This document shows positions 15,763 to 61,088 of a stretch of DNA of 64,000 nt, piece after piece. The DNA is from Magallana gigas (taxonomy: Eukaryota): assembly GCF_963853765.1 (NCBI RefSeq), contig NC_088854.1:15066001-15130000 (forward strand), read 5' to 3'. The first letter of the stretch is position 1; the number at the start of each line of letters is the position of its first letter. A model generated the notes under the pieces. It was not told the origin of the DNA. It searched no databases and saw nothing but the letters and a program-made list of their open reading frames with translations. The position numbers and the translations under genes are program-made.

Positions 15763-17753
15763 TCTTAAGTGACTTAACTGTTCAAAGCTGCACAAAGTTA
15801 TCTTGCCGGGATCACAAGACAAATCACATGACAACAACAGGAAATAAAATAGGGCGCGTTTGATTGAATTGCAACTTCTCGGGCGTTTGGTGTTCTTTGT
15901 GGTCTATGAACGACAACTCTGTGTGTTCTACATGTGTACATATGTGGATGAATACCCCCCCCCCCCCCCACTCCAAATTAAAATAGATACAGGCCTTTAG
16001 CCTTAAGGTATGGAAATTATTATGCTCTGTCTTCATTTTTCATCTCAAACATTAAATTCTGGACCAAAACTGTAAAAGATACAAACTTCTTGTGCCTCTT
16101 CACATTATATGTTTACAACCATCCATTTCAAATTGTACAAAGGACAGTGTCTATCTATAAGAAAGGTTGAAAATCGAACAAATCGATGGTGAGAAAATGA
16201 TTTCGATGTGCCAGCATTTAAAAAATAAAGGAGATAGGTAAAACGAAATGATATGCTTTTAATACTCAAATTGTTTTAATGAAATAGATTTATCTGATAC
16301 ATGTATAAATATTTGACGAAAAAGTCACAAACTTGTACTGGGTGGGTGTTGACAAGATTGACATTTGTACGTACGTCCCTGATTGAACAAACCATGTAGG
16401 CCTAGGCCTATATACAAACTGTGTACGGCATAAAAATGTATATATGCACTCGAGAATTATTTTAATTCGAAGATAGGCGCCGTATGAGTAAATACCATTA
16501 GTAGCAATAGTACATGGCTATTGGGGGGGGGGGGGGGGGGGTTAATAAAAATTGATATAAAATGAAATACATAGTCGGTATCAAGCGTAATTTTTCGCCC
16601 CATACAAAACGTACATATATTTTTTGGTGCAATAAAATCTGAAATGGTCTTATCTAATGTTGATATTCTGAGTAGTATCCAGTTTTAATTTTACCAAAGT
16701 ATGTTGTATATGAAGAAAAAAATCTTGTCAATTTCACGATTAGGCAAAGATTTGTATTATCTGTTTATTGAGAGAACATTTATTGGTGAATTCAAAAAGG
16801 GGGTCGCCCCTTAAAATTCTTCTTTTGTGATCAAAATTTTGAAGAAGAAAAACCCCCAGATTAGCACAACTACAGAAAAATCAGTTTTCGCTGTTATTTA
16901 TTGATCTAATAATCTGTCGATCAAGTAATACATATCTGTAGCGAGAATAGCAAAAAAACTCATAACATGTGAGTGTCTAAATACTTTTGATCTTTAAATG
17001 CAATGCATCAATGGTAATGCACGCACAGTCGGGGGGGGGGGGGGGGGGGAGGGTGTGTGACAAGAACTTCCTTATCATTTACCTATAGTGACAATGATTT
17101 AAAAACAAATAATATATGTATAAACATGTAAAGACAAGTATCTCCGGTAATTCATCACAATAGTTTATTCTTCCAATAAAAAAAAACAATAATTAAATTC
17201 AATCGAGTTCATTGATGAAGTGCAAAGTCATCTGATGGAAAGATCAACGTTTTGTAATAGACGATTATTTGTGACCAAAACTCTGTATGACCCCACCCCA
17301 CCCCCCCCCCCCTCCACTCCCCCCTGCTGCAATTGGAGCATTCGTTCAACTAAAGGGTTAACTGTCTATAAATACAATACACTGTTTTTCGATGCGATTT
17401 AAAAATATCATTGTTGAATTACGTCCTTGATTGTCTTTTAAGATCGTCGGGGAAAGACCCTATAATAGAATGAACTCTTGCCCGTAATAACGGACGGCAC
17501 TTCTGATCGATAAGCTCTAAATACTCAGCAATAGATGCAGAAATCGGCTTATTCTGTGTATATAAACGTCACGAGTTTAAAAGACCATGTTTCAAAACAA
17601 TTTTAGAGCGTTAGTGTACGGAGATCCGGAACCTAGTTGCATTATATTCATGTACTATCAAGCCGCCATGGAATACACGTTCTGACAGGTACATATGTAC
17701 TAGCTTAAGGTAAGCACAATTACTGACATAAATCGTACTACCCTTCTTCTTTG

Positions 17754-38212: not shown

Positions 38213-41200
38213 ATGGTAAGAAAAGATGAACGACTTCGTTTTGAAGATATTCCACTTCACGATATATATAAATTTAATGCATTTTACTTGTATGTCTATA
38301 AAAATGAATCGTTTTGACGTGACGCAATCCTAAACAAATGTACCCGAGTGCAAAAATATGCAATGGATACATGTTGTGTCAATGAAATTCTTACTTCAAA
38401 GACAATTCTATCATATTATAGAAAATAAATCAGCTGGCTTAAAATATCTTGACGGAAATCTGATTCCGATATTTTCCCCTTTTGACAGATTTTTCTAGAA
38501 AAGTACTTGTTTGTCTTGAAGATGAATGTAATTGATTTTTTTTTCATCTAAGTTGATGAAAACTTCTTGTCTTGTGACATATAATGACATTGTATTGATC
38601 TTTTTCTAGAAACCTTTGCTAGAACTAATCATAGGTGGTGCTCAGATTGTGGGTCGTGCCTTTACAAGGGCAGTGAGGGAGGAATTCCGCACCAGTCAAC
38701 AAGCAGCTGAGAGAGCAGGTGGGGGGAGGCAGGGTGCTAGACGAGTTGCCAATGATTCAATAACTGGAATGACACTGCAGGTACATTTTATGTTGAAAAG
38801 TTACAAAAATCCAAATCAAATTGTGTAATTGTTCAATGTTGTGTAAATCTATAAATGCCAACATGTGAAGGACATCTGAATTTTGAATTAATAATTTTAT
38901 CTTGACTTACTTGAAGCATATTCATTGATGCAAGTTACTTGTAGAAACATTTGGTGGAATACAATTTGAAGTTTTTAAATTGCTAAGTTACAATGTTTTT
39001 CTTATATTTTAGACATTTTTTACAAAACAGTTGATTTTGACAAACACAATCTTCAATTATAAAGCCAGCTAGACAGATATGGAAGCAGTTTCATTTTTGT
39101 GTTTTCCATTTTCTTTAGGAAGCCAAGCAGATTTTAAATGTGACAGAGCCACATGATATAGAAACCATTGAGAAAAACTACAAACATTTATTTGAAGTCA
39201 ATGACAAAGCCAAAGGTGGTTCATTATATTTACAATCCAAGGTAATTAAGTGTACATTGTACAAGTCTTATAAAAGAATTTAGTAAGTTTATCAAGTCTC
39301 ATATTTTACTTTTTATATTACCGTATTTTCCCGACGACTCGTCGATGTGGACGACTCGTCGAATTGCTCATTTTTAGCCAAAATTTTAACAAAATCCTAC
39401 GATACGTCGATTCAGACGACACGTCGAACTTATCGCTTCAAAATGGTGTATAAAACTGCAGTAACATTATCAGTGTATGATGCCACGATGTCCCCGATAT
39501 TGCTACCAATTATTATTAATGATTAACATTTAAACAATTACTCTTTATACTTATGAATCATATTTTCAAATACCGACAACATCTACAAAGTCGCTTGCAT
39601 TGTAAACAATTCCCGATATCGCGTGTTATGCAAAATTAAACTTACTTTGACAGAAATATTTTATTCCCATGCATTAAAATAATCACCCACTCTGACCATC
39701 GCCAATGTATTCGCCATTACGTAACCAGCCACCTGTTGACTCGGCGCGTGGTCAATGTTTGTTTAACAATTTCCGGTGTCAGAGGCATGCACCTGTCTCG
39801 TGTCGGACTTCAAAGGGGGATCTCAAGTGCAGAAAGCTTAGCAATTACTATGATTTGATGAAACTTGTTTACTTTGTATCCAGTAATACAGTTATATGCT
39901 ATTATTTTAAAGAGACACTGTTAGAATAGATCGATCCTTTGTACAACTTGATAATGACGATATACGACATACATACGTTTCCTAAATTTTTTATTTAACA
40001 ATAATCAAAGAATTGGACAATAATTAATTAATGAACTATAATCACTCTTATAACGGTACTCTTTATGTACACAGTGAGTGAAATTGCCGTATAGATTTCA
40101 GCCTTAGCAAGATTATTAACACAACCGGGATCAGTAAAGACTACCGTATAAACAATAGAGTTGATAATTGCCGATTACGTTTTTTAAGATTGATTTTGAC
40201 CATGAAATATTTCTTATTTATACTTTCCACTAACAACTCTTTACTACTAAAATAATAAAACTTCAAAACATTCCCCGGACCTACTGCAATATGTTTTTCC
40301 ATCCAAGTCTGGTTTCAATTTTACTGCGCAATATTATCTTCCCACTATAGTGATATATGGAATCATGTGACAATGTGTTTATAAAAACGGAACGGTAAAA
40401 CTTTTAATTGATTAAAGACACTTGCACCATTGTTCAATAACTGTTATTAATATGTATTCTAGTGTTAACAGATGAGTGAAAATGATAATAATTAAAGATG
40501 AACATTGAATTCAACAACGTAATTTTCAATAACACAGCCAGCTCAAGATGATTAAAACCAAGATTTTAAAATTTTTTTCCCCACAATTTACTGACCTCAA
40601 GCCTTAGACAAGTCGATCAGGACAATAAGTCGAGTGCTCTGCTTCATAGAAAAAAAATACCGACTTATCGTCGGGAAAATACGGTAGTTATATTTTATTT
40701 TAGTAATTGTATATTATACCGAGCGCAGCGAGAGGCGGGTAAAGCCCGCCTCGCGAAGCGAGGATTAATGGTAACACGTATATATATAAGAAAATCAGTG
40801 AAAAATGAAAGTTGAATCAGGGGTACTAAGGCCAAAAAAAATTTCTTCCAGCCCTGGGTGCCGCCATCTTGGCAGCCATTTTGTTTTTAAAAAGTTAGTT
40901 CGATCATTGATTGATCAGTACTTATCGATGTTTGTTGCCCCTAAACTCGATTAAATAAGTTCCAGTGTTTCAATAGAAGGTAATTCGAATTAAAAGAAAT
41001 TAAAAAGGAAACCAGATAATTTTCAATAGTGCTTCAATCAAGAAACACGACATGTTCTATGTATGTGTTATCAAATTATCAGATGGAAAATAAAAACATT
41101 AAGGTCAAGGAACAGATCTTTTAGATGCCGAATAAAGTATTTAATTTTATTACAGCGGCATTCATATGAATTAAATTGATAAACAATGAAAGAAGAAATA

Positions 41201-43661: not shown

Positions 43662-46600
43662 TTATACTAGTGTTGATCCAGTTCTAGAGTTAAAAGTTAA
43701 AAAGTCGAACTGTGTACTGTAAACCGTGTCTGGCGACTGTTCGTTAGTTGCATGGACCTCAAACTCTGTTCCTCCAAATTTCATACAGACTTTAATTTTT
43801 GCATCCTTTTTCCAACCGCCTTCTGGTGGTTGGATCGTTATGCTTCCCAACATCTCGCACTTTTCGTCGGTCGTGAAGGCTGGGTTTTTCTCGGTGGTCG
43901 CAAATATGTTCAGAGCCATTGGAGCGTTTGGTTCCGTTACATCGTATGTTTTGTCTACGCTACTGTTAACACTGACACTTTGGCCAGCCTCAATAAACTT
44001 GTTGAAAATATCTTTGCACAAGACTTCTGTCTTGGTCTCTAATCTTTTTTCAGGCGGATGTATGCCTTCTTTAAAAGTGTCATAGACAGCCACGCCGTAG
44101 GTGTACTTGCAAACTCTAGACGCTATTGTCAGAGGAGCGTGGCCATATAACACAGCCCCTTTAACAACGGCTAGACCGGGTTCTGGGGGAACCACAACCC
44201 GAAGGTCAGGGAATGCCTCCTTTATGGCGTCTACTATGATATTTGATGTCGAAAACCCTCCCACCATCAGTATCGCGGATATTCTGTTCTCTGAGTCTTG
44301 GTTCTCCAGGATTTCTCTGACGTGTTGTACGATCTGTTCTTTTGTCGTCTGAAACAGCGTCTCCAATAATTCCCTAGCAAAGGCAAACTTGTTTCCCGCT
44401 TTCAATTTTATTTTATCCGCGTATTCTGAATTGGAAATGGCGTTTTCCAGCGACCACCCTTTCATTTCTCTCACGTACTCTGAGAGATATGCTGGTATGG
44501 AGATCACTACTGGCCGAATGTTCTGACCCATCCTGTCTCTGATGGTCCTCTTTTTCATCTCAAAATCTCGCTGGAACTCTAACATGTCTGTTCGCCTCTC
44601 CGTTTTGAACCTCTTGATAACGTCCTCTCCAAATATCGATATCAGCAATTCCATGTACGCTCTGTCTACATTCGTACCTCCCCACGCCCCACCGCTAGCT
44701 ACATTGAGTTCCTTCAAAGTGTTCTCGTCGATGACTTCGTGGACTGTGACGTCACCAGTTCCACCTGAAAAATGAAATATATTTTAGTAATGGTTTTCTT
44801 GCTGTGGTAATTTGCATCACGTACGTCTTTCTGGTCATGATCTCTATAAGTATGAATTCAGTAAAAGACTTTTTTAGTTTTAACTTTGCACCCCTCTTGG
44901 TATTTACTGACCCGGAGGTTACGGTTTAGGACATCGTCGGAAATTTGCAACCAGTTGTGCATGCGAGACTGTCGGTGGGTTTCCGATGGTAAATTTTGAC
45001 GAACTTAATTGGTAAAACCTTAAACTGTAACTTTAATACTCTTATACGCTGTAGTTACTAATAAATATGGTTTCAAAGACCCCCCCCCCCCCCGATGTTT
45101 ATAACGGAAATGTTGCACCGTTCCGCGGTTCTCAGAATGGAACCAGATTAAATACTGGTTTAATTTTATTTAAAATTCTGCACTTATAATCGAGATGCTT
45201 GCATATAATTGGCACAAAATGTACGTACTTTTTCTTTGTTAGAAGTCATCAAGCTAATATAGGTAAGCTTAAAACTATGAAATCCATGTATGCTTGTATA
45301 ACTGCGTATTCTTAATGCCATATCAATGACCCTCTACACAATAATGAATAATATTTATTGGAATTGCAAAAAAATTATATCAATATATTATGTTTTTTTT
45401 TATTTATTGATTTTTTCATTTAATATAGGCAAGAAAACTCCAATCTACAAAAACACTTAATTGCCGATAAATTTAAAAATCACATAGCTAAATTAGTGGG
45501 GAAAACACAGTTTCTAGTAATAGAAATCGATTACTTCATCTCTAAAGTACTTGGACCGTTGACGTCCTTTCACATTTTAACATTCTTCATTCAGAGATGA
45601 ACAATTAATATTTATTAATATACCTCATTATAATAATTTTATCTAACGCGTTATCTGATTGGTTCTAGACAATTACGTGTCAGGGTAATAAAACTTCGTA
45701 TTTCCCTGTCATCCTTATGTTTTTCATCGTATCCTGTTATTGCTTTACAATAGTTTGAAAACAATTAATAATGAAATAAAAAATGTATGGCATGAACGTT
45801 CGAGAGATTTGAAGATTTATCCCCCCCCCCCCCGGAAAAATCATATTTCCCTCGGTCGTTGCCCTTGGGAAATATGATTTTCACTAGGGGAATAAACCTA
45901 CCTTTCTCCCTCACAATCATGCAATAAATGTTTAATATTCAACGAAAGAAACATTTTTTTTTTTCATTTGAGCGAAATTAACGTACCACCGAGATCAAGA
46001 ATCATGTACCGAGTCCCGGCACAGAACGGAACCAGTTTTATATTCTGTCCATCTTCGTTCGTCTGTTTCTCTGTGGGGATGTATTTACAGAACAGCGAAG
46101 CGGCCTCGGGCTCCAGTGCTAACTGCAGATTCTTTGATGGTATTCCAGCCTGATTATTGGATCATTAGAACAATAATATAAATTTGTATTGAAATATAAC
46201 TTGTAACTTACTTTAAAATTAATTACCGCCAAATAATTTATAATATATTGCATACAAACTTGCCTCAACAGCGGCCTCTCTCATAAATTGTTTCGCGGGT
46301 TCGTTCCATATAGCTGGCACAGTGAGGACCCAGGTGATGTCCTCATGCCCTAGCCCCAGGTCACGATCTTTTATGGTTTTGAAAAAATGATCTTTAAGAT
46401 AGGCTATCGAGTGTTGGAAGACAGATCGAGCGGGGTACTTCCGTCCACCCGAATCTTCGATGGTGACGTTTCTATCCATGATCTATAGGTTTAACAATGT
46501 ACAAGTTTAGTACAAGGCATGTGAATATAGGTTCATCGATCCTATGGTATGGGTTTTCTAAAGATATATATTTATAAAAATCATCTCCAAAACAATACTA

Positions 46601-47971
46601 GTATTATACGAGTATGAGGAGGGTTTATGAAGTCAGTGACATGCAATTTGATTGCACAACCATATTCTCACAAATGGATAAAAAAGTTAAAATATAATTG
46701 TGTTCATTTTGGAAAAAAACCTTTTTTTTGGACATGGCTAACTATAAATAATGACCTTGGATCCCTTAGAATACAACTTTCATTCAAATGAAGTGTTCGG
46801 GAAGGAAATGGTATGTGTTTTAACTTTGAAGCCCGTTATTGCTGTGAACATATTCTAGTATAGCGACATTTATGACATTTTCAAGCATGTGCGGATCGGG
46901 GGTTGGGGGAAGGGTCCAGAATTTCTTCAATTAACATAGTAGAATGACTAAAAATATGCCTCGGACCACCCTGACATACTAAATTATCCCACGGACCCCC
47001 CTCCATTAGCAAGATTTCCATCTTGAACCTTACGTTACGATTAGAACTGCAAAATCAAAATTTTAAAAAGAGATTTATTACAGTGCATGTACCATTTTGT
47101 CGTGCAACATCATCTTGAAGCGGCGGAAGTAGTGGTAGTCATGGTGTTCATCATTTTCTATCAGCTCCTGGTACACATCTTCTGCCTCGTAACCGAAAGA
47201 GTTGAACGAGTCGTCTGTATTGAGAAGCAAGGTGGTCGGGGTTTTCCATGACATCAAGCCGTTCCCGCCATCTGCTACCCAAGACGTGTTCGCAAATATG
47301 CTTCTGATTCCGTCTGACTCATAGTCATGTCGGAACTGAAAAGCATACCCGGAGAACGTTGTTCCAAAGTCGATGGCCACAACCAGAAAGGAGCTTGAAC
47401 TCGGGTCTTGATCTGTAAAATGCACAAAAGATACATTACATAGGTCAGTTTTGGAAAACGAGAGCTTTTAAACAAACTAAAGGTATACTTTTCATCAAAT
47501 TGTATGCAGGATTCATATATTCTAGCATTTTTCTCTCTATCTGTTTTAAAGCATAGTTTAAACGGATATCAATTTATGTAACATTTTCCGTGTTTAAGCT
47601 TTGCCTTCAAATTCCTAAATTGTACATTTCAAGCACCGGGAAATTTAGCGTTAATTATAGTAAACATATAACACAAGCTCAGAGGGATTGTGGCCTGAGA
47701 ACAAACTTTATTTTGGTGAGTTTCAAATTCATATATATTACGCGCCTTTAAATCTTGAAAAATCGTCCCTTAAATCGTTTTAATGTGTATGAGAAAGTAA
47801 ACAATAATTGATTGGTTGTTTACAAGAGATAAGAAAATAGCCCATATCCTGTCAGTGTACATAAAATTTACAACTCTCTATATATCTTTCAAAACGAAAG
47901 TACTTGAAAAATATAGCTAATTTGTTGTTATGGATTTTGATGCAAATGCTGACCAACTTACCTCGTGACAT
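43662..47971 (-). CDS. HSPA12: Heat shock 70 kDa protein 12 (HSPA12A/B-like), about 604 aa
   Basis: Exons 47971-47962, 47412-47093, 46482-46264 (GC donor), 46149-45987, 44764-43662. VVAIDFGTTFSGYAF, KTPTTLLL, WVLTVPAIW, LALEPEAAS, LDLGGGTGDVTVHE, SGGAWGGTNVD, MVGGFS, LAVVKGAVLYG. Confidence 0.93.
45622..45935. mobile_element. Probable non-autonomous element with internal palindrome (Crypton-like appearance)
   Basis: 15-bp stem AAAATCATATTTCCC/GGGAAATATGATTTT at 45837-45881 next to a poly-C run. The family assignment and boundaries are from recollection only. Confidence 0.3.
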
Positions 47972-48306
47972 TATGTAACAGAGTTGATCTGGACACGCTC
48001 AACAAGCATAACGGCTGAGACTGACCAGTTTGTCAACACCCCATCATATGGACTTACAAATGGCGAGGAGTTCCAGGTATATTGTGTAATTTAATCAAAC
48101 CAAATTCCAGGTACCAGCTCTTATTGGGGGTTTAAATCAAACCGAAAGTACATGTCTATTTTGTAGTTAGTAATGAATTGTAGTCTTGTTAATGGTAATA
48201 GGGAGATTTTTACTGATCTGTTGAATACACTGCCATGTATATGCTTAATTAGTTTATCCATAACTATCGGATTTAATTTACAAGCACATTTGGGAAGCAC
48301 CAGAGT
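47972..48306. promoter_or_regulatory. Putative very short bidirectional promoter HSPA12 / Mieap-like gene
   Basis: 335 bp between divergent ATGs. An acceptor CAG at 48301-48303 and candidate donors CCAG|GT at 48076 and 48110 suggest a 5' UTR exon within this gap. Confidence 0.6.
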
Positions 48307-50227
48307 ATGGGCACCGGTTCTTCTATGAATGATCCACACCAGGCCACGGTGAAATATACACCTACCCCCTCACCCACGGCCGGACGGACATTGACTGACG
48401 TCCTAAGAGAATATCAGAATGGCAGGAACACTCTCAATACGGAAGACGTTCAAGCTTTGGAAAACTTTATACAGAAAAACTCGAAATATGTAAAGGTATT
48501 TATTCTTCCGTGTTCTATTGAATAATGCATTTATTCACATTCTCTATGAAAACTCGTATGTAATAAATATATTTTGGCATTTTTTCTTATATAGGGCACA
48601 GATATTCATTCGACGCTAGGTGTCGCAAAATCAAAACAGACACTGGTCAATCTTCAACAGGAACGTAAAGATATACTGAATAAGTACGTAAATATTGTCG
48701 CAAACAATGTTGTAAATAATAATTCAGTATTTATATTCATGTAAATTTACAGTATTTCCCCCCACTTAAATAAATTCAACATTTACATTAATTGCACACA
48801 TACGCTGTATTTATAAATAAGATATTTCTTGGTTTGTGTAGGATATCTGAAATAGCAGGTGCTCGTTTAAAGTCCAATAATCCTGCTATAGCCGACCTTA
48901 GCGATCAAAATCGGCCTAGTAAGTTGGCAGAAAAGTTCTCGGAGCTGTATGACAACGAATGGACAGATGCTACCGAAGAATTGAAAGAAAGAAAGAAGAA
49001 AGAAAAATCTACGGAGAAATCGGAAGAGGAAATGGAGATCACTGTCATCAAATTGTTCTATGAAATCACCAAGGTGGTACATCAGAGTTATTTTCATGTA
49101 TAATTAATATATCAAATTTAGAACCTGCCGCTGTATGTATGTGTGAATAATCCATAATTTTCAAAATTGGTAATTTTTTAAATTTTTAATGAAGAACCAA
49201 AAAAATGTTACTGTTATTAGGAGGAATAGTTTGAACATGATTTAGAAAGTGAAAATTGTATGGTTCTCTCGTTTTAAAAGGATATCTATAAACGCTGCAA
49301 AAAGACATCAGAGAAACAACTAGAGGAAGTAAAGACGGCCGTTTGTTTGGACGAGAATAGTGAAGTGGCAAGTATACAAATTCATTTCGTACAACATGCA
49401 TTCTTGCTGTATGTCATCATATTCGCTTAATTAATACACACACATATGTAATTGTAAGTATTTAACTTTGATCAGCATCAGAAAATGACAGTCGAACTTG
49501 AAAGAAAATGCAGAGAATTTATCAGAACTCACGGTGAAGTAAGGCTACGCCAAATTATAGAGGTAAATTCATCACACATTCAATGTTTTTTTTTAAAGTG
49601 CAATCGATGTATTCTTATTTGTTGATCAAAATTATATTGAAATTCCAGAAACTTCCAGATGAAGTGTTACAAGAAATCGAGAATGCTGAGGCCAATGAAT
49701 TAAAAATAAGCTGTAACATACTTAAGAGCTGTAAACGCGTTATGGATTTCATAAAATCGTGCATTCGACTTTGTTGGTACATGAATCTACAGGAACCTCC
49801 CGTATACATGGTCACAGACGTGGATCCCAACTCATTGCACATGTTTCGAGCATATACAAGGTCTGGTGACGTCATTGATTATGTAGTGTGGCCCAGTTTG
49901 TTGCTAAAAGAGGATGGGCCTCTTCTTTACAAAGGAGTTGCGCAGATGAAGAGAACTGTCACGGCAACGCAGACTAACAAACGAGAACCTGTTCCTGACC
50001 ATAATGGTGCCGATAAAGATAGCCTCAAGGAAGGTGGAGGAACTAATCAACAAGATCCGTCAACACTGTATGAAAATGTACAATTTTCAGAACAGAAGAA
50101 AAATAAAGCTTGGAACGGTATGGTTGATAAAAGTGAAAAGCAAGAAGAGAATGTGTCAAATATGTCTCCCGGACGTTTTGTAACGAAAGTTAATGTTAAT
50201 CGTGCGCCTAAAAATGAGGATGTATAG
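48307..50227 (+). CDS. Uncharacterised Mieap/SPATA18 C-terminal-domain-like protein with N-myristoylation motif, about 420 aa
   Basis: Exons 48307-48495, 48595-48683, 48842-49073, 49281-49367 (GC donor), 49476-49562, 49649-50227. MGTGSS start, NNPAIADLSDQNRPSKLAEKFSELYDNEWTDA, CIRLCWYMNLQEPP..YTRSGDVIDYVVWPSLLLKEDGPLLYKGVAQ. Boundaries of the middle exons are less certain. Confidence 0.75.
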
Positions 50228-50359
50228 GAGACCCGTTGAAAAAATAACAATAATCAGTGAAAAAATTTATTGACTTGGTTTGAGGGCGTGATGAAAACTG
50301 TTTTGACAAGAAAGCCAAAAACCCACAGATGAAAGGCATACAGTGAGTGTCGGATGGCC

Positions 50360-51934: not shown

Positions 51935-52565
51935 CAATAATAATAATAAATAACAATAATAATAATTTTTATAGCGCCCTATATAATAAAATTATCACTC
52001 TAAGGCGCTTTCCATAAAATGGACATTACAAAACATAGAATGCATAGCTATAAAACAAAAGGAAAAGTAAATAATATAGGCCGGCATATTACAATCATCT
52101 ATGGTTAACTATTGGATATAATAAAAATTTTGCGCACGCATTAATATTTATCTTGAAAATTAAACAAAAGCCAGTTAATAAAATAAGTTTTCAATTGTTT
52201 TTTAAAACATTGAACAGATTTGGCTTGACGGATACGCACTGGAAGGCTGTTCCATAAATAGGGAGCAGCATAGCTAAATTGTCTTTCACCATATGTTCCA
52301 GTGTGCACCCTAGGTAAAATCAGTGACAAGCTCCCGCCGGATCGTAGAGTCCGGTTTATTGTATGGATTGTAGCTAATTCCTGTAAGTATTCTGGAGCGA
52401 ATCCATGAATTGTCAAGTAGGTAAAAACAAGGATTTTATATTTCGGACGGAATTCTACCGGAAGCCAATGTAAGTCAGCAAGAATAGGGGTGATATGATC
52501 TCGTTTTCTTGTTTTGGTCACAAGTCGAGCTGCGGTATTTTGGATTTTTTGTAATATATCCATGG
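51935..52565 (-). mobile_element. 5'-truncated L2-type LINE 3' fragment
   Basis: LQKIQNTAARLV..DHITPILADLHWLPV..FSYAAPYLWNSLP..FKKQLKTYF, followed by a ..AGGGCGCTATAAAA(ATT)n tail. Confidence 0.9.
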
Positions 52566-56112: not shown

Positions 56113-59100
56113 ATGGCTTCCAAAAGGTAATTTAGTATTCACATTATTACATATTCGTATTATTACATTATCTTAATTTACAGTTTCATTAAAGTTAGCT
56201 AAAAGATCAATATGAACTATAAAACTCAAAAGCCACATGTTTTTAAAAATATTTCAATTTCATTGGTGGTCACTTTCAAAGTAGAACAACCCAAAATAGT
56301 GAAATGAATGGTTATTTTTGTTGGTAAATGTATTAATTTTGTAGTGTCGAAAGATTAACTGTGTTTCAAATGTTTTTAAGGAAAGCTGCAAGTACTAAGG
56401 GAGCTGAATCAGACGAAGAAGCAAATGGTGTTGATAATTCAGATGCGGACCTGGATTCCTTGCCAGAAGGTTGGAATAAAAATATCCTCTTCAATTGAAA
56501 TGATAATCTAATGGCAGTGTCTGTATATTTCTAACATTTTTGTTATGCTAAAACACTTGCATGAGACTACAATTATTTTTATTTTAACATCAATTAAAAC
56601 ACTTTCAGTTGTTTGTGAACAGCAATAAAACCAGATAGTACATTTGTAAACAAAGAGTGAAAATAGATTTTAAAAGTCTTGATAAAATTTTTAAAATAGA
56701 CTTGAATGTAAGAATAATTGAACACATCGGTGAAGACTACTGATGAATGCTAATGTATGTAGGGTAATGAGTACAATATGATGCAATTCTTCATTTCTTA
56801 AGGTACAGTTGTTGTGCATCCTGAACCAGTAAAAAAGAAAGGATCATTCAGAGGACCCGAATTTCAATCAAAGAAAAAAGAAAAGAGAGACTCAAATACA
56901 GGTTGATTGTTGTTTATATTAGAAACATTTAGTGAAGGATTTCCATCTGACATGTATAAATAAGATAAAAGTATTGACTACTGTAGCTCTAGGTCTAGCT
57001 CCTGGTCTGAAAAAATTCAGATGGATGACCTGGGGGCTGCAGTTCCATACATGTTAAAATGTTGCAATTTACATCGCACAAAAAAATTGTCCTACTTTTG
57101 GATTGATTGATGTTTTTTTCGAACACAATCTATACAAATATTCAATTCCCCAAAATTCCTGGGACATTTTACTACAGATATCCTCACTTTACCTGCCTCT
57201 GGTATTTTTTTTAAGTGAAAAGACTCAATTGCTAAAATTAATCCCCACAAATTAGTTCATCACTGATGTATTGTGATTTTAAGTCGGCTCACTTTTAAAC
57301 GTTGGTTTACACCACATGTGCATTTTCTTGGGGTTATATATTATATTGGATCTAAGAATCTAATGAATATGTCTAGATGCACAAGAAATACTTTTTTATT
57401 AAATACATGCACCAATCATTAATAGCTATTTATTAAAACAAACTCTAGAAACTTGAAAATAATAATAAAAAAAATAAATAAATAAATGTACACACATGTA
57501 GATTTATACCAATATTTGTATTTCTCGGAGAAGAATATAAATTCTATTCATTTTATACAACTTATAATTCTTCCAGATTAAAAATATTGATAAACTTTAT
57601 AGATTTCAGTTCTGGAAGTTTAGGTAGAGTGTCCTGTACAGCATGCGGAGAACAAATTAACATCCATAAGACTGGCAGTGTCAGAAAGCACCCGGAGCTT
57701 AGGGTCTTGGTCTGTAAGGTCAGTGACCAATTGTAACTTGTTTGTTAAATACAAGTAGATTAGAGCTTATTTATATAATATACATGTAAATGGAAGTTTT
57801 TAGGAGTAGAAGATATGCAATCTAAATAAAATTTACTTTCACATGCAGTATTATGGTTTGTGCTATAAATGTACCTACATGTACATAGTATTGAAGTGTT
57901 TTGGGTGCAAAAAGGAAAATTGAATTCTGTTTTATATTGAAATAAATACACATATCTTGTTTGTGTTATTCAACTGCAGGAATTGTACTGAACTTTTTCA
58001 GAGTTGCCACAAGTACCACACCAGTGGTCCTATATCTCGGGATGCGGATGGTCTAGATGAACAGTGTAGATGGTGCAGTGAAGGGGGAAAGCTGTTTGGC
58101 TGTGATTTCTGTCACAATGCATTCTGCAAAACTTGTATCATAAGGAACTTGGGAAGATCTGAAATCAGCAACGTGACAGAGGATGGTATTGTTATTATTC
58201 AAAATGCATATTTTATTTCAATCCTTATGAACTATTTTTATCATACATATTTATCAAAGTCCATCAAATGATAACCAAGAACTATAAAGTTTACGAAGTA
58301 TTCATTCTCCTAACATTTACTAATTATAATTACAGTAATGTACATTGAATATATTTTTTCAAGGAAAAGAGTGGAAGTGTTATGTATGTGATAATACTCT
58401 TCTGAAACCTCTGCGGGCAGAGTGTAGGAAAGTCCTAGATCACATTGAGGCAGAGAACCAAAAGGTTAAAGAGAAAGCCAAGACCCCAACCAATGCCACA
58501 CCTAAATCAAGCAATCCCAAGGAGTCCAATGATTCCAAAAAAGCTGCAGCTGAAAAACAGCAAGACAACAAACCTAAAGAAGGCAAACAGTTGTTGAAGG
58601 TACTAACGAGTAGCAATCCATCCTCTAGATCCTCCTCTCCCAGCGAGTTCCAGAAAGCCATTGTTACCAAGCCCCATGCTGGCACTACAATCAATACAGA
58701 GAAAGTTGTAATAGATCCCAAGACTGGTAATACAACTAAGTTTGAGATGGTATATCCGAATGCCAATATTGTACAAACACAATATAAGCCTCCCTTAAGA
58801 CCAACTATAGGTAGTACTACAACAGAGAGTGGTTTGTCCCTTTCGTTTACTGGACTCTTGCCAGGAAATATCCACAGTATCATCTCAAATTTGTTATCTA
58901 TGACAGACAATCTACAAGAGCTCTTGAAAAATATTCAAGAAAATGTTATACCCGAGTCTAATTTAGATAAACTTCCTTTTGAGATTTCTCTTAGGTCTTT
59001 AAGTAAAGAGCAACTGCAGGCAAGGTTGACTGCTGCAAATCTAGTGAAAAGTGGTGTAAACTTGTTTTTACAAGAAATGGCAATGAAAACTTCTGCAGCA

Positions 59101-61088
59101 GGAGTAAAAGCTATGAATCTTAGCCAACAAGGATCTCAGCCCAAAATGACCTCTTTGCTAGCTGGAAAGCCTTTGGACAGAAATGGTGGTGCTATGACGA
59201 TAGATACTCCTCAAAAATTTGATAAACCGGGTGGTGCCAACTCTCCTTTAGTGACAAGTACTCCAAAACCTAAGTCCGCTGAGGATGATTCTGAGGTTTT
59301 AGTGCTCAGTTCATCTCCCGAGAAGAGTGTTTCTCAAAAATCTGACATTTGCTCTGAATCACAGGATGATGGTGATGACACAATGGTGAACGAGAATGAA
59401 ATAGCTGAAAAGGAGCTTTTGAAGGATGCAGCAGAGGAATTGGGAAGTGAAGATGATGATTCAGATAGTCAAAACAATGTATCCACAGGAAAGACGGAAC
59501 TAAAAGGAAAGGGGAAATTAGTTGTTAAATTAGTGGACATATCAAATTCTACAGAGAAAGACCAAGAAAAGGCATCAAGTGTAACCTCAACCACAAATGA
59601 AGACAGTGATAATTCACGGAAAAGAACCAGAAATAAAACAAGAGATGAAACAAATGAGAAAGACAAGGAATGCAAACCAGTGAGGAAAACTAGAAGTCAG
59701 TCCCAGGATAATGATAGTGATTCAGACCAAAGCCAATCCAGAAGTCAAGGGTCTGACAGAGCAGCACAGAAAGGAAACAAATCCAATACAACCAGTCAAA
59801 ATGACAAAAAAGCCTCTAAAACAAACAGCAAGGGAAAGTCTGAAAGCAAAGGAAAACCTAAAGAAAGTGATGATATGGAAGAGGATAGTAGTGAAAAAGA
59901 GGGAAAGTCCAGCAAAAACTTTGCTGATAAAAAGATTGAGAAGGCAGCCAAAAAATTAGAGAAGAATGAAAATATAAAGACTAGTGTAAATACTAAGTCA
60001 GCGGATGATGATTCAAGTCATTCTACAGAGGATAGTGATGACCCAAAGGAAGAGATTGATGATGAAACTGATACTACTGAGGATGAAGACTTTGAAGAGT
60101 CAAAGTCCCGACGATCTTCAAAAAGAAAGTCAGGTACTCTGCCAAAAGTTAATATTGTGTGTTGTCCATTTGTTACACTTTTCATGAACTTGATAGAGTA
60201 AAATTAAAATCTATTCTAAAACTTATATTTACTAATACAGTTGAACTTTGATATCTCAAACACTGATATCTCGAATATAATGGATAAGTCGAAGTAATAT
60301 GTAAGTCCCAACCCCCTTTTTTTGGGAGTTGATTTTAATCAACTCTCCTATGCAGTTACTCAGACAAACCGAAAGTGAAACAGTGTTTGGACCTCAGCAC
60401 AAATCATTCCTGCTGATAAGACTTAGTTCTTGAAAATATTTGATGAATTCGATGTAATGTATGCTACAGGATTGTTTTTCAAGGAAACTTATTTATAAAT
60501 ACCTTGAAAATAGTCAGATTTTAAATGGTACCAACAATTTGAATATTTTTTGTAGTCGTATGTATTCCTACGCCAGAGTTAAATATAGTCGCGTTCAACT
60601 CGATGCTCGGCTGTCTCCGTAAATCCTTGTCGGAGATTTACGGTGTCAGCCGAGCGTTTGGTTGAACGAGACTAGAGTTCAATATTGCTTGGATCCATAC
60701 AATTTTCGAGAAATATTTCTATCACTAATACTATGATACATAGTTTGAATGAATTAATTTTATCTTACAATATTATTTAACATTATTCATACGGGGGTTT
60801 CTCGACATTCTTATCGAAAAAGTCCAAAAATTCATATTATAAAAATGTACCTTCTTCAAATTAGAAAATACATGTACTTGTCATGCAAAATAACATATCA
60901 TTGATTTTAAAATAAATAAACATCGACAAAATCAACTCCCGTCAGTTCTTCAGTACTTTGATTTTTATAGGTATTTTACTCTCAATATCTCGAATACTCG
61001 GATATAAGTTTTTTTAACACTTTCATCTAGTTTAAGATCACGAAGTTTGACTGTAAGTTATCATTTTGATCTTGCACTGAAAAAGCTA

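Follow-up and report, generated by a model that had tools for sequence, protein, structure and literature searches.

An ancient divergent gene pair of bivalves encodes an HSPA12 ATPase and a MIEAP-domain protein, its candidate GrpE-like partner

Introduction

In the genome of the oyster Magallana gigas, a gene for an HSPA12-like ATPase and a gene for a MIEAP-domain protein stand head to head, which raises the question of whether their products work together as an Hsp70-type ATPase and its cofactor or whether the two genes have nothing in common beyond a promoter region. The locus lies in a stretch of 64,000 nucleotides (the window; C2:15066001-15130000, contig C2 being NC_088854.1 of the 564-Mb, 29-contig assembly GCF_963853765.1), and a first-pass annotation of this stretch had proposed a cognate, co-regulated and membrane-anchored pair, akin to DnaK and GrpE, that duplicates as a unit. 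GrpE is the nucleotide exchange factor of bacterial and mitochondrial Hsp70; as a homodimer it binds a single Hsp70 ATPase domain and accelerates the release of ADP, and dnaK and grpE are often neighbours. Vertebrate Mieap ('mitochondria-eating protein'), or SPATA18, is a p53-inducible mitochondrial quality-control protein. Expansions of both the HSPA12 and the MIEAP families in bivalves have been published (PMC8382680; PMC13580251), and a 2026 review describes HspA12 as a protein of unknown function whose massive bivalve expansion has no clear explanation (PMC13580251). What we propose here, tentatively and with slightly less than even confidence, is an ancient divergent two-gene module with overlapping first exons, whose products would bind in a GrpE-like manner, with the partner setting the nucleotide state of HSPA12 at the membrane.

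Head-to-head transcripts with overlapping first exons

The HSPA12-like gene runs on the minus strand in five exons and encodes 604 residues (ATG at 47971, stop codon ending at 43662), and the MIEAP-domain gene runs on the plus strand in seven exons, the first of them non-coding, and encodes 420 residues (ATG at 48307, stop codon ending at 50227). Protein P0272, which is 97.6% identical to the MIEAP-gene product, agrees with the RNA-corrected model; all exons are listed in Table 1. The RNA evidence covers positions 44400-50350 and comes from two stranded poly-A runs and two contig runs, one on record as RNA and one presumed to be RNA. All four HSPA12 junctions and all MIEAP junctions are seen in it, and in the raw runs the reads of one gene point opposite to those of the other. 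Each gene also contains one GC-AG intron (HSPA12 intron 3 and MIEAP intron 5), both with the donor context G|GCAAGT and both confirmed by RNA.

The two start codons are 335 bases apart, exactly the distance given in the first-pass annotation, and the exon in an untranslated region (UTR) that it had placed in the gap is real: it is the 5'UTR exon of the MIEAP gene, which begins at 48001 or before and is spliced from 48076 to 48285 across an intron at 48077-48284. On the opposite strand, the first exon of the HSPA12 gene reaches from 47962 to at least 48030. The two first exons overlap at about 48001-48030, with transcription starting less than 1 kb apart on opposite strands. Because of this overlap, one unstranded contig spans both genes. 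Either raw-read run covers the two genes, as does one of the two contig runs, and a co-regulated pair is supported in so far as the promoter region is common and the same samples contain transcripts of both. As an observation, the divergent pair is confirmed in full.

Family membership of the two proteins

Both products belong to recognizable families. The last exon of the MIEAP-domain gene matches the Pfam family PF16026 at 50.6 bits (curated cut-off, 27 bits) over profile positions 100-193, exon 4 supplies positions 1-43, and ortholog P0121 (81% identical) matches profile positions 1-193 of 195 at 81.2 bits. In fold searches against the AlphaFold database (AFDB), the nine best Swiss-Prot matches of this protein are vertebrate Mieap (expectation value E from 3.7e-6 to 7.2e-4) and the cluster matches are MIEAP proteins. 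The PF16026 match substantiates the Mieap/SPATA18-type C-terminal domain that had been recognized at first sight. The MGxxxS start had been recognized as well; it is present as MGTGSS and recurs in orthologs, as MG[ST]xx[ST] in oysters, Mizuhopecten and Mactra, while that of Pecten differs (MGSGNV). Given this conserved motif, N-myristoylation of the MIEAP-domain protein is plausible. In the ESM Atlas (query P0121:100-330), a cluster whose proteins are unnamed and come from Mucoromycota fungi scores 0.92 by language-model features, near the MIEAP clusters; the MIEAP fold may extend beyond animals.

The HSPA12-like protein is 75-78% identical to a 'heat shock 70 kDa protein 12A-like' of Saccostrea echinata, and its named database matches are all HSPA12A/B-like, none being a canonical Hsp70. 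Its gene model contains both the phosphate-1 (IDFGTT) and the phosphate-2 (LDLGGGTGD) motif, and the protein can be aligned to the ATPase domains of DnaK and BiP. The HSP70 family PF00012 matches it in part, at 36.7 bits against a cut-off of 20.6, and the match is confined to positions 136-266 and 293-370 of 599. Pfam finds nothing for the beta-sandwich or the lid, which argues that a canonical substrate-binding domain and lid are absent, and relatives of the protein have DUF8340 instead. The description of HSPA12 as an ATPase that lacks a canonical substrate-binding domain holds for this protein, in which Pfam covers the ATPase part only.

One orthologous locus across bivalves

The divergent pair is also present in Saccostrea echinata, with a gap of 333 bp, and in Pecten maximus, Mizuhopecten yessoensis, Mya arenaria and Mactra antiquata the best HSPA12 relative stands head to head with a MIEAP gene. 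Counting the window's own pair, six species from three orders thus have this orthologous pair in one and the same orientation. Among 77 HSPA12 proteins in a phylogenetic tree, those from the pairs group in a single clade (Shimodaira-Hasegawa-like approximate likelihood ratio test, SH-aLRT, 99) whose branching order is species-like, and a tree of 105 MIEAP proteins likewise unites their partners in one clade (SH-aLRT 90). The HSPA12 gene of Saccostrea that belongs to the sister clade has no MIEAP neighbour. The cognate and conserved pair proposed in the first-pass annotation is upheld by these congruent trees and by the divergent arrangement, with orthologs on both sides, in five further bivalves; the linkage is not unique to the oyster locus.

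The surroundings of the pair are conserved too. A Pam16 gene, which in the window converges on the 3' end of HSPA12, has the same position relative to HSPA12 in Pecten maximus and Solemya velum, and an ATRX-like gene lies beyond the MIEAP gene both in the window and in Saccostrea echinata; these flanking genes therefore mark the same locus across species. Since cross-species pairs, clades and flanking genes agree, the pair is one ancient orthologous locus, at least as old as the common ancestor of oysters and scallops, on the one hand, and of Mya and Mactra, on the other, a split of the early Palaeozoic. Pam16, or Magmas, is a J-like subunit of the mitochondrial Hsp70 import motor; its adjacency may be plain synteny, though it is another neighbour from an Hsp70 system.

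Expansion and pairing within the oyster genome

At least 65 MIEAP genes are found in the genome, 62 of the 65 on contig C2, together with at least 117 HSPA12 last-exon matches, of which 67 of the 117 are on the same contig. Only three divergent HSPA12/MIEAP pairs occur (at 7.08, 15.11 and 51.83 Mb on C2), against 0.4-0.5 expected from circular shifts, a marginal excess (P ~0.03-0.05). The clustering of both families on one contig and the marginal outcome of this permutation test are what one would expect if two hugely expanded families, concentrated on one chromosome, had come to lie side by side by chance. Such chance adjacency is, however, largely refuted by cross-species synteny, that is, by an orthologous pair of one orientation in six species and three orders, with congruent trees and conserved flanking genes, and we regard it as very improbable.

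The first-pass annotation had further suggested that the pair duplicates as a unit, and this part of it does not stand as a general rule. The HSPA12 copies most similar to the paired gene, at 42% identity, lie at 37.8 and 41.2 Mb with no MIEAP gene in the vicinity, and the most similar MIEAP copies, at 36-38% identity, stand without an HSPA12 partner. Because the nearest paralogs of either gene are unpaired, the pair is not generally duplicating as a unit, and the three pairs among all the copies counted above constitute no more than the marginal excess already given.

Several features of contig C2 may be recorded here. The contig makes up 11% of the genome and holds its MIEAP and HSPA12 copies mostly as separate tandem clusters. 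The second divergent pair (C2:7082655-7089501) includes the MIEAP copy with the second-highest Pfam score, 92.4 bits, and the third (C2:51826055-51837382) includes an HSPA12 member with in-frame stops in its six-frame match.

A predicted complex at the nucleotide cleft

Complex modelling of the pair points to binding. The complex was modelled 1:1 from residues 60-335 of P0121 and the HSPA12 ortholog P0002, which shares 92.7% identity with the protein encoded in the window, and the interface score (ipSAE) of the complex is 0.76 (runs 0.75, 0.78 and 0.76) versus 0.01 for the best of three controls. In the calibration of the tool, 51 of 78 solved complexes attained the mark, as did 2 of 108 mismatched pairs. 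Contacts agree between runs to at least 89%, and the partner has a predicted local distance difference test (pLDDT) value of at least 79. This modelling makes it most likely that the two products are binding partners.

On the MIEAP side, the predicted interface is formed by the N-terminal motif with the first bundle helix (91-141) and by the beta domain (292-325), and among 43 diverse MIEAP proteins these interface positions are on average far more conserved than the rest of the domain (0.65 vs 0.35, P = 9e-12). On the HSPA12 side, the model uses residues 27-59, which follow the phosphate-1 motif on the side of lobe IB, as well as residues 297-333 and 359-363, a stretch that aligns to lobe IIB of Hsp70. 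Because the interface falls on lobes IB and IIB by motif positions, the MIEAP domain would bridge the top of the HSPA12 nucleotide cleft, the site of known exchange factors.

The conserved arrangement could also be that of a bidirectional promoter only, kept by regulatory constraint such as co-induction in stress or mitochondrial upkeep, with proteins that do not touch. Head-to-head pairs with a shared promoter are common and are often conserved without protein contact, and the absence of fusions among 150 MIEAP representatives, the lack of a partner for most HSPA12 and MIEAP paralogs in the genome and the false passes in the calibration of the complex tool are all in keeping with this explanation. 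The score of the complex, on the other hand, exceeds not only its controls but every mismatch in the calibration (0.34-0.59); in addition, the interface coincides with the conserved surface of MIEAP, and MIEAP is also linked to a J-domain gene in bacteria, as described below. We thus consider it rather unlikely that the promoter is all that the two genes have in common.

GrpE as the nearest known architecture

The AlphaFold model of P0121 (pLDDT 77.5, with the domain above 90) consists of a long helix (70-105), a four-helix bundle (118-271), a six-stranded beta domain (278-326) and a disordered tail. When the whole model was searched against the PDB, Foldseek returned nothing significant and no GrpE among the top 50, while the aligner VIA placed three GrpE entries at ranks 2, 5 and 6 of 48,161 chains, namely 1dkg_B (Z 6.1, root-mean-square deviation 4.2 Å, 137 residues aligned of a chain of 151), 4ani_A (Z 5.8, 7.5 Å, 146 of 156) and 9bls_B (Z 5.8, 6.7 Å, 152 of 161). 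With a subdomain model restricted to the last two helices and the beta domain (pLDDT 92.6), the ten best Foldseek matches in the PDB are all GrpE, from four species (E 0.18-0.77, template-modelling score 0.26-0.38), and GrpE entries are the sole VIA matches that cover the beta domain (Z 5.0-5.1). Over both models, the VIA alignments with GrpE cover 87-152 residues at Z 5.0-6.1. In these model comparisons GrpE is consistently the nearest known architecture of the MIEAP domain. Membership in the GrpE family does not follow from this: Pfam scans of the MIEAP-domain protein give no GrpE match, and no sequence homology between MIEAP and GrpE was found by Pfam, by a profile search of PDB sequences or by HHalign. 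The layout likened to the GrpE head in the first-pass annotation is supported to the extent that GrpE is the closest solved fold in two independent aligners, at weak scores. From the weak fold matches and the mapping of residues, we infer that the predicted binding is GrpE-like in mode.

In two respects the oyster pair resembles DnaK and GrpE: an Hsp70-type ATPase is encoded beside a partner whose modelled structure passes from a long helix through a helical bundle to a beta domain at the C-terminal side, and the predicted MIEAP contact also lies on lobes IB and IIB of the ATPase. The differences are several. First, the MIEAP bundle comprises four helices of one chain, whereas GrpE is a dimer and its bundle is built from two chains, as in the 1DKG structure. 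Second, the oyster partner has a myristoylation motif and a disordered tail. Third, the oyster ATPase is an HSPA12, without the canonical substrate-binding lid. Fourth, the oyster genes are divergent with overlapping first exons and do not form an operon. Finally, MIEAP and GrpE share no sequence homology.

Bacterial MIEAP genes beside a J-domain gene

The MIEAP family is also linked to another component of Hsp70 systems. P0131 is a MIEAP protein from 'Candidatus Endonucleobacter bathymodioli', an intranuclear parasite of deep-sea mussels, which has three intron-less tandem MIEAP genes in bacterial context in two independent assemblies. Adjoining them is a divergent gene of 452 residues with a C-terminal J-domain (HPD motif), and in a second genome of the Endozoicomonadaceae a homologous J-domain gene (29% identical, HPD kept) adjoins a MIEAP gene in a different flanking context. 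J-domains represent the other class of cofactor that is universal to Hsp70, and the association thus fits an Hsp70-cofactor role for MIEAP. It comes from two genomes, a small sample; MIEAP domains occur in 6 of 63 genomes of the family, and a scan of bacterial genome contigs with P0131 as query returned only the same metagenome-assembled genome.

Side observations on these loci are the following. A transposase lies in between at the Endozoicomonadaceae MIEAP/J-domain pairs. A fourth MIEAP gene of the parasite, at locus L036 (G001:C61; 7357-12144), encodes 1595 residues with a C-terminal MIEAP domain and is separated by about 4 kb from the gene of a BIR+RING apoptosis inhibitor (16358-17749). 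This class of apoptosis inhibitor has been reported to be host-derived in the parasite (PMC11521996), in a paper that mentions neither MIEAP nor J-domain genes.

Table 1. Coordinates of the genes and exons at the divergent locus, of neighbouring features in the window, and of the bacterial MIEAP/J-domain loci
Feature	Position	Strand	Evidence
HSPA12-like last coding exon; lobe IIA/IIB part of ATPase and C-terminal region; stop 43662-43664	43662..44764	-	Open reading frame, gene model, RNA junction 44764/45987, 75-97% identical database proteins
HSPA12-like coding exon 4	45987..46149	-	Gene model; both junctions in RNA contigs
HSPA12-like coding exon 3, then GC-AG intron (donor GC 46263-46262)	46264..46482	-	Gene model; 114-base intron in RNA contigs of two runs
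HSPA12-like coding exon 2, phosphate-1 motif IDFGTT	47093..47412	-	Gene model; junctions 46482/47093 and 47412/47962 in raw stranded reads
HSPA12-like exon 1: 5'UTR and ATG 47971 (10 coding bases, 47971-47962); upstream end at least 48030, possibly ~48074	47962..48030	-	Sequence; RNA contig 69-113 bases past junction 47412/47962; HSPA12-direction reads in bin 47982-48180
MIEAP-gene exon 1, 5'UTR only, antisense overlap with HSPA12 exon 1; start at or before 48001	48001..48076	+	GT..AG junction 48076/48285 in three runs; 76-base RNA contig 48001-48076; opposite-direction reads in the same bin
MIEAP-gene exon 2 (coding part 48307-48495): ATG 48307, MGTGSS candidate N-myristoylation motif, first helices	48285..48495	+	Gene model, RNA; MG[ST]xx[ST] in orthologs
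MIEAP-gene exon 3, long helix	48595..48683	+	Gene model; RNA junctions; helix 70-105 of structure model
MIEAP-gene exon 4: start of MIEAP domain, most conserved motif of the family DLSDxNRPxKLAExxSELYDNEWTDA	48842..49073	+	Pfam PF16026 positions 1-43; conservation; predicted interface residues 91-141
MIEAP-gene exon 5, then GC-AG intron (donor GC 49368-49369)	49281..49367	+	RNA junction 49367/49476 in three runs; extra Val in P0121 and P0272
MIEAP-gene exon 6, helical bundle	49476..49562	+	Gene model, RNA
MIEAP-gene last exon: last bundle helix, six-stranded beta domain (DYVVWPSLLL..GPLLYKGVAQ), ~95 disordered residues	49649..50227	+	Pfam PF16026 positions 100-193, E 3e-13; structure models
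Pam16 gene, convergent to HSPA12 3' end	38616..39253	+
Open reading frame of 140 residues, intergenic past MIEAP gene; resembles C-terminal end of a retroelement protein	52141..52563	-
Open reading frame: end of ADD-type zinc finger, then acidic Ser/Lys-rich region; looks ATRX-like	58345..60201	+
Ca. Endonucleobacter bathymodioli MIEAP/J-domain locus	L018 3698-13701		JASXSV010000003.1
Second Endozoicomonadaceae MIEAP/J-domain locus	L037 3550-9873		G007:C1:1621549-1627872

How the partner may act on HSPA12

The genes of the HSPA12 ATPase and of a putatively N-myristoylated MIEAP protein are transcribed divergently from one promoter region, and in the mechanism that we propose the conserved surface of the MIEAP protein would rest on lobes IB and IIB, over the top of the HSPA12 nucleotide cleft. 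From there the partner could set the nucleotide state of HSPA12, either as an exchange factor or as a lock on one state, because the predicted contact position is where known Hsp70 exchange factors act. The myristoyl anchor of the partner would hold the ATPase at the membrane. Exchange-factor activity is plausible on the modelled contact, and we infer membrane tethering of HSPA12 by its partner. The broader proposal of a cognate ATPase and cofactor is supported by independent and purely computational lines. A conserved cognate pair, a shared promoter region and predicted binding speak for it; duplication as a unit and sequence homology with GrpE are not supported.

Binding need not imply exchange. 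The MIEAP protein could bind HSPA12 as a membrane adaptor, a recruiter of clients or an inhibitor, its likeness to GrpE being convergent and uninformative on activity. The passing complex model and the conserved myristoylation motif agree with this as well, GrpE gives no sequence signal, the four-helix bundle of MIEAP is intramolecular whereas that of GrpE comes from two chains, and the literature describes vertebrate Mieap as acting in mitochondrial quality control in association with condensates or membranes. Against it stand the predicted contact on lobes IB and IIB, the site of known exchange factors, and GrpE as the consistently nearest solved fold; we judge this alternative unlikely, if by no means remote.

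A number of observations weigh against a GrpE-like cofactor encoded by an ancient two-gene module. First of all, the resemblance to GrpE is weak: the Foldseek scores are below significance and the VIA Z values are under the tool's caution level of 8, and arrangements of helices with a small sheet can recur by convergence. A genome search with PF01025 found only the true GrpEL1 gene (C8:33.47 Mb), an exon of which shows 100% identity with a Crassostrea angulata protein, and none of the at least 65 MIEAP genes, the MIEAP profile found no GrpE among PDB sequences, and HHalign gave the alignment of MIEAP with GrpE a probability of 0.45%. Second, the complex was folded without alignments, and from orthologs of a related oyster rather than the window's exact proteins; when the tool was tested on 44 neighbouring gene pairs picked blindly, 7 passed as well, and the pass of the present complex may partly reflect memory of solved Hsp70-GrpE complexes. 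The HSPA12 residues at the interface are not specially conserved (0.59 vs 0.62 elsewhere). Third, none of 150 MIEAP representatives matches HSPA12 by phmmer, so the check for fusions was negative among them; 17 long MIEAP representatives contain MIEAP alone by Pfam, and the atlas search gave no mixed cluster. Fourth, Pinctada imbricata and Solemya velum have no MIEAP gene within 10 kb upstream of the HSPA12 ortholog. Finally, in contig run X11 the HSPA12 gene is well assembled while none of the MIEAP coding exons is present, and expression of the two genes may therefore not always be coupled.

Relation to known systems and perspectives

A search of the available literature found no paper that links HSPA12 and Mieap; the papers that name both SPATA18 and HSPA12 are apparently unrelated studies that merely list both genes, and neither a likeness of Mieap to GrpE nor binding of HSPA12 by Mieap turned up. 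A fixed genomic partner for an HSPA12 clade is not known to have been described before. Among known proteins, vertebrate Mieap/SPATA18 shares PF16026 with the oyster protein and its AlphaFold models are the best Swiss-Prot fold matches, whereas the oyster protein differs by its MGxxxS start and its lesser length; to our knowledge, human SPATA18 is not adjacent to HSPA12A or HSPA12B. HSPA12A/B-like proteins are the closest named relatives of the oyster ATPase, and what sets the oyster clade apart from them and from the bivalve expansion is that it is specific and ancient and has a fixed genomic partner. A precedent for a divergent Hsp70 paralog with a dedicated, non-generic cofactor is Ssz1/HSPA14 with zuotin/MPP11 in the ribosome-associated complex (PMC13580251). 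The oyster pair would be similar in joining an atypical Hsp70 to one dedicated cofactor, and it differs in that the partner of Ssz1/HSPA14 is a J-domain protein and the genes of that system are unlinked.

Taken further, MIEAP could be a dedicated HSPA12 cofactor family throughout animals, serving as GrpE-like regulator and membrane anchor, in which case the bivalve expansions would be matched pairs, SPATA18 would act via HSPA12A and HSPA12B, and intranuclear or symbiotic Endozoicomonadaceae would use host-derived MIEAP together with a J-domain protein to take over the host chaperone system; this extension we regard as doubtful. The pairing itself is apparently as old as the autobranch bivalves and is the first link between the HSPA12 and Mieap families. 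The mechanism of Mieap/SPATA18 is unsettled, and the pairing, the predicted interface and the GrpE-like architecture provide a directly testable hypothesis. If true, Hsp70 cofactors would gain a new class and the joint expansion of HSPA12 and MIEAP in bivalves would have an explanation, and the predicted GrpE-like binding would give two poorly understood families a common function.

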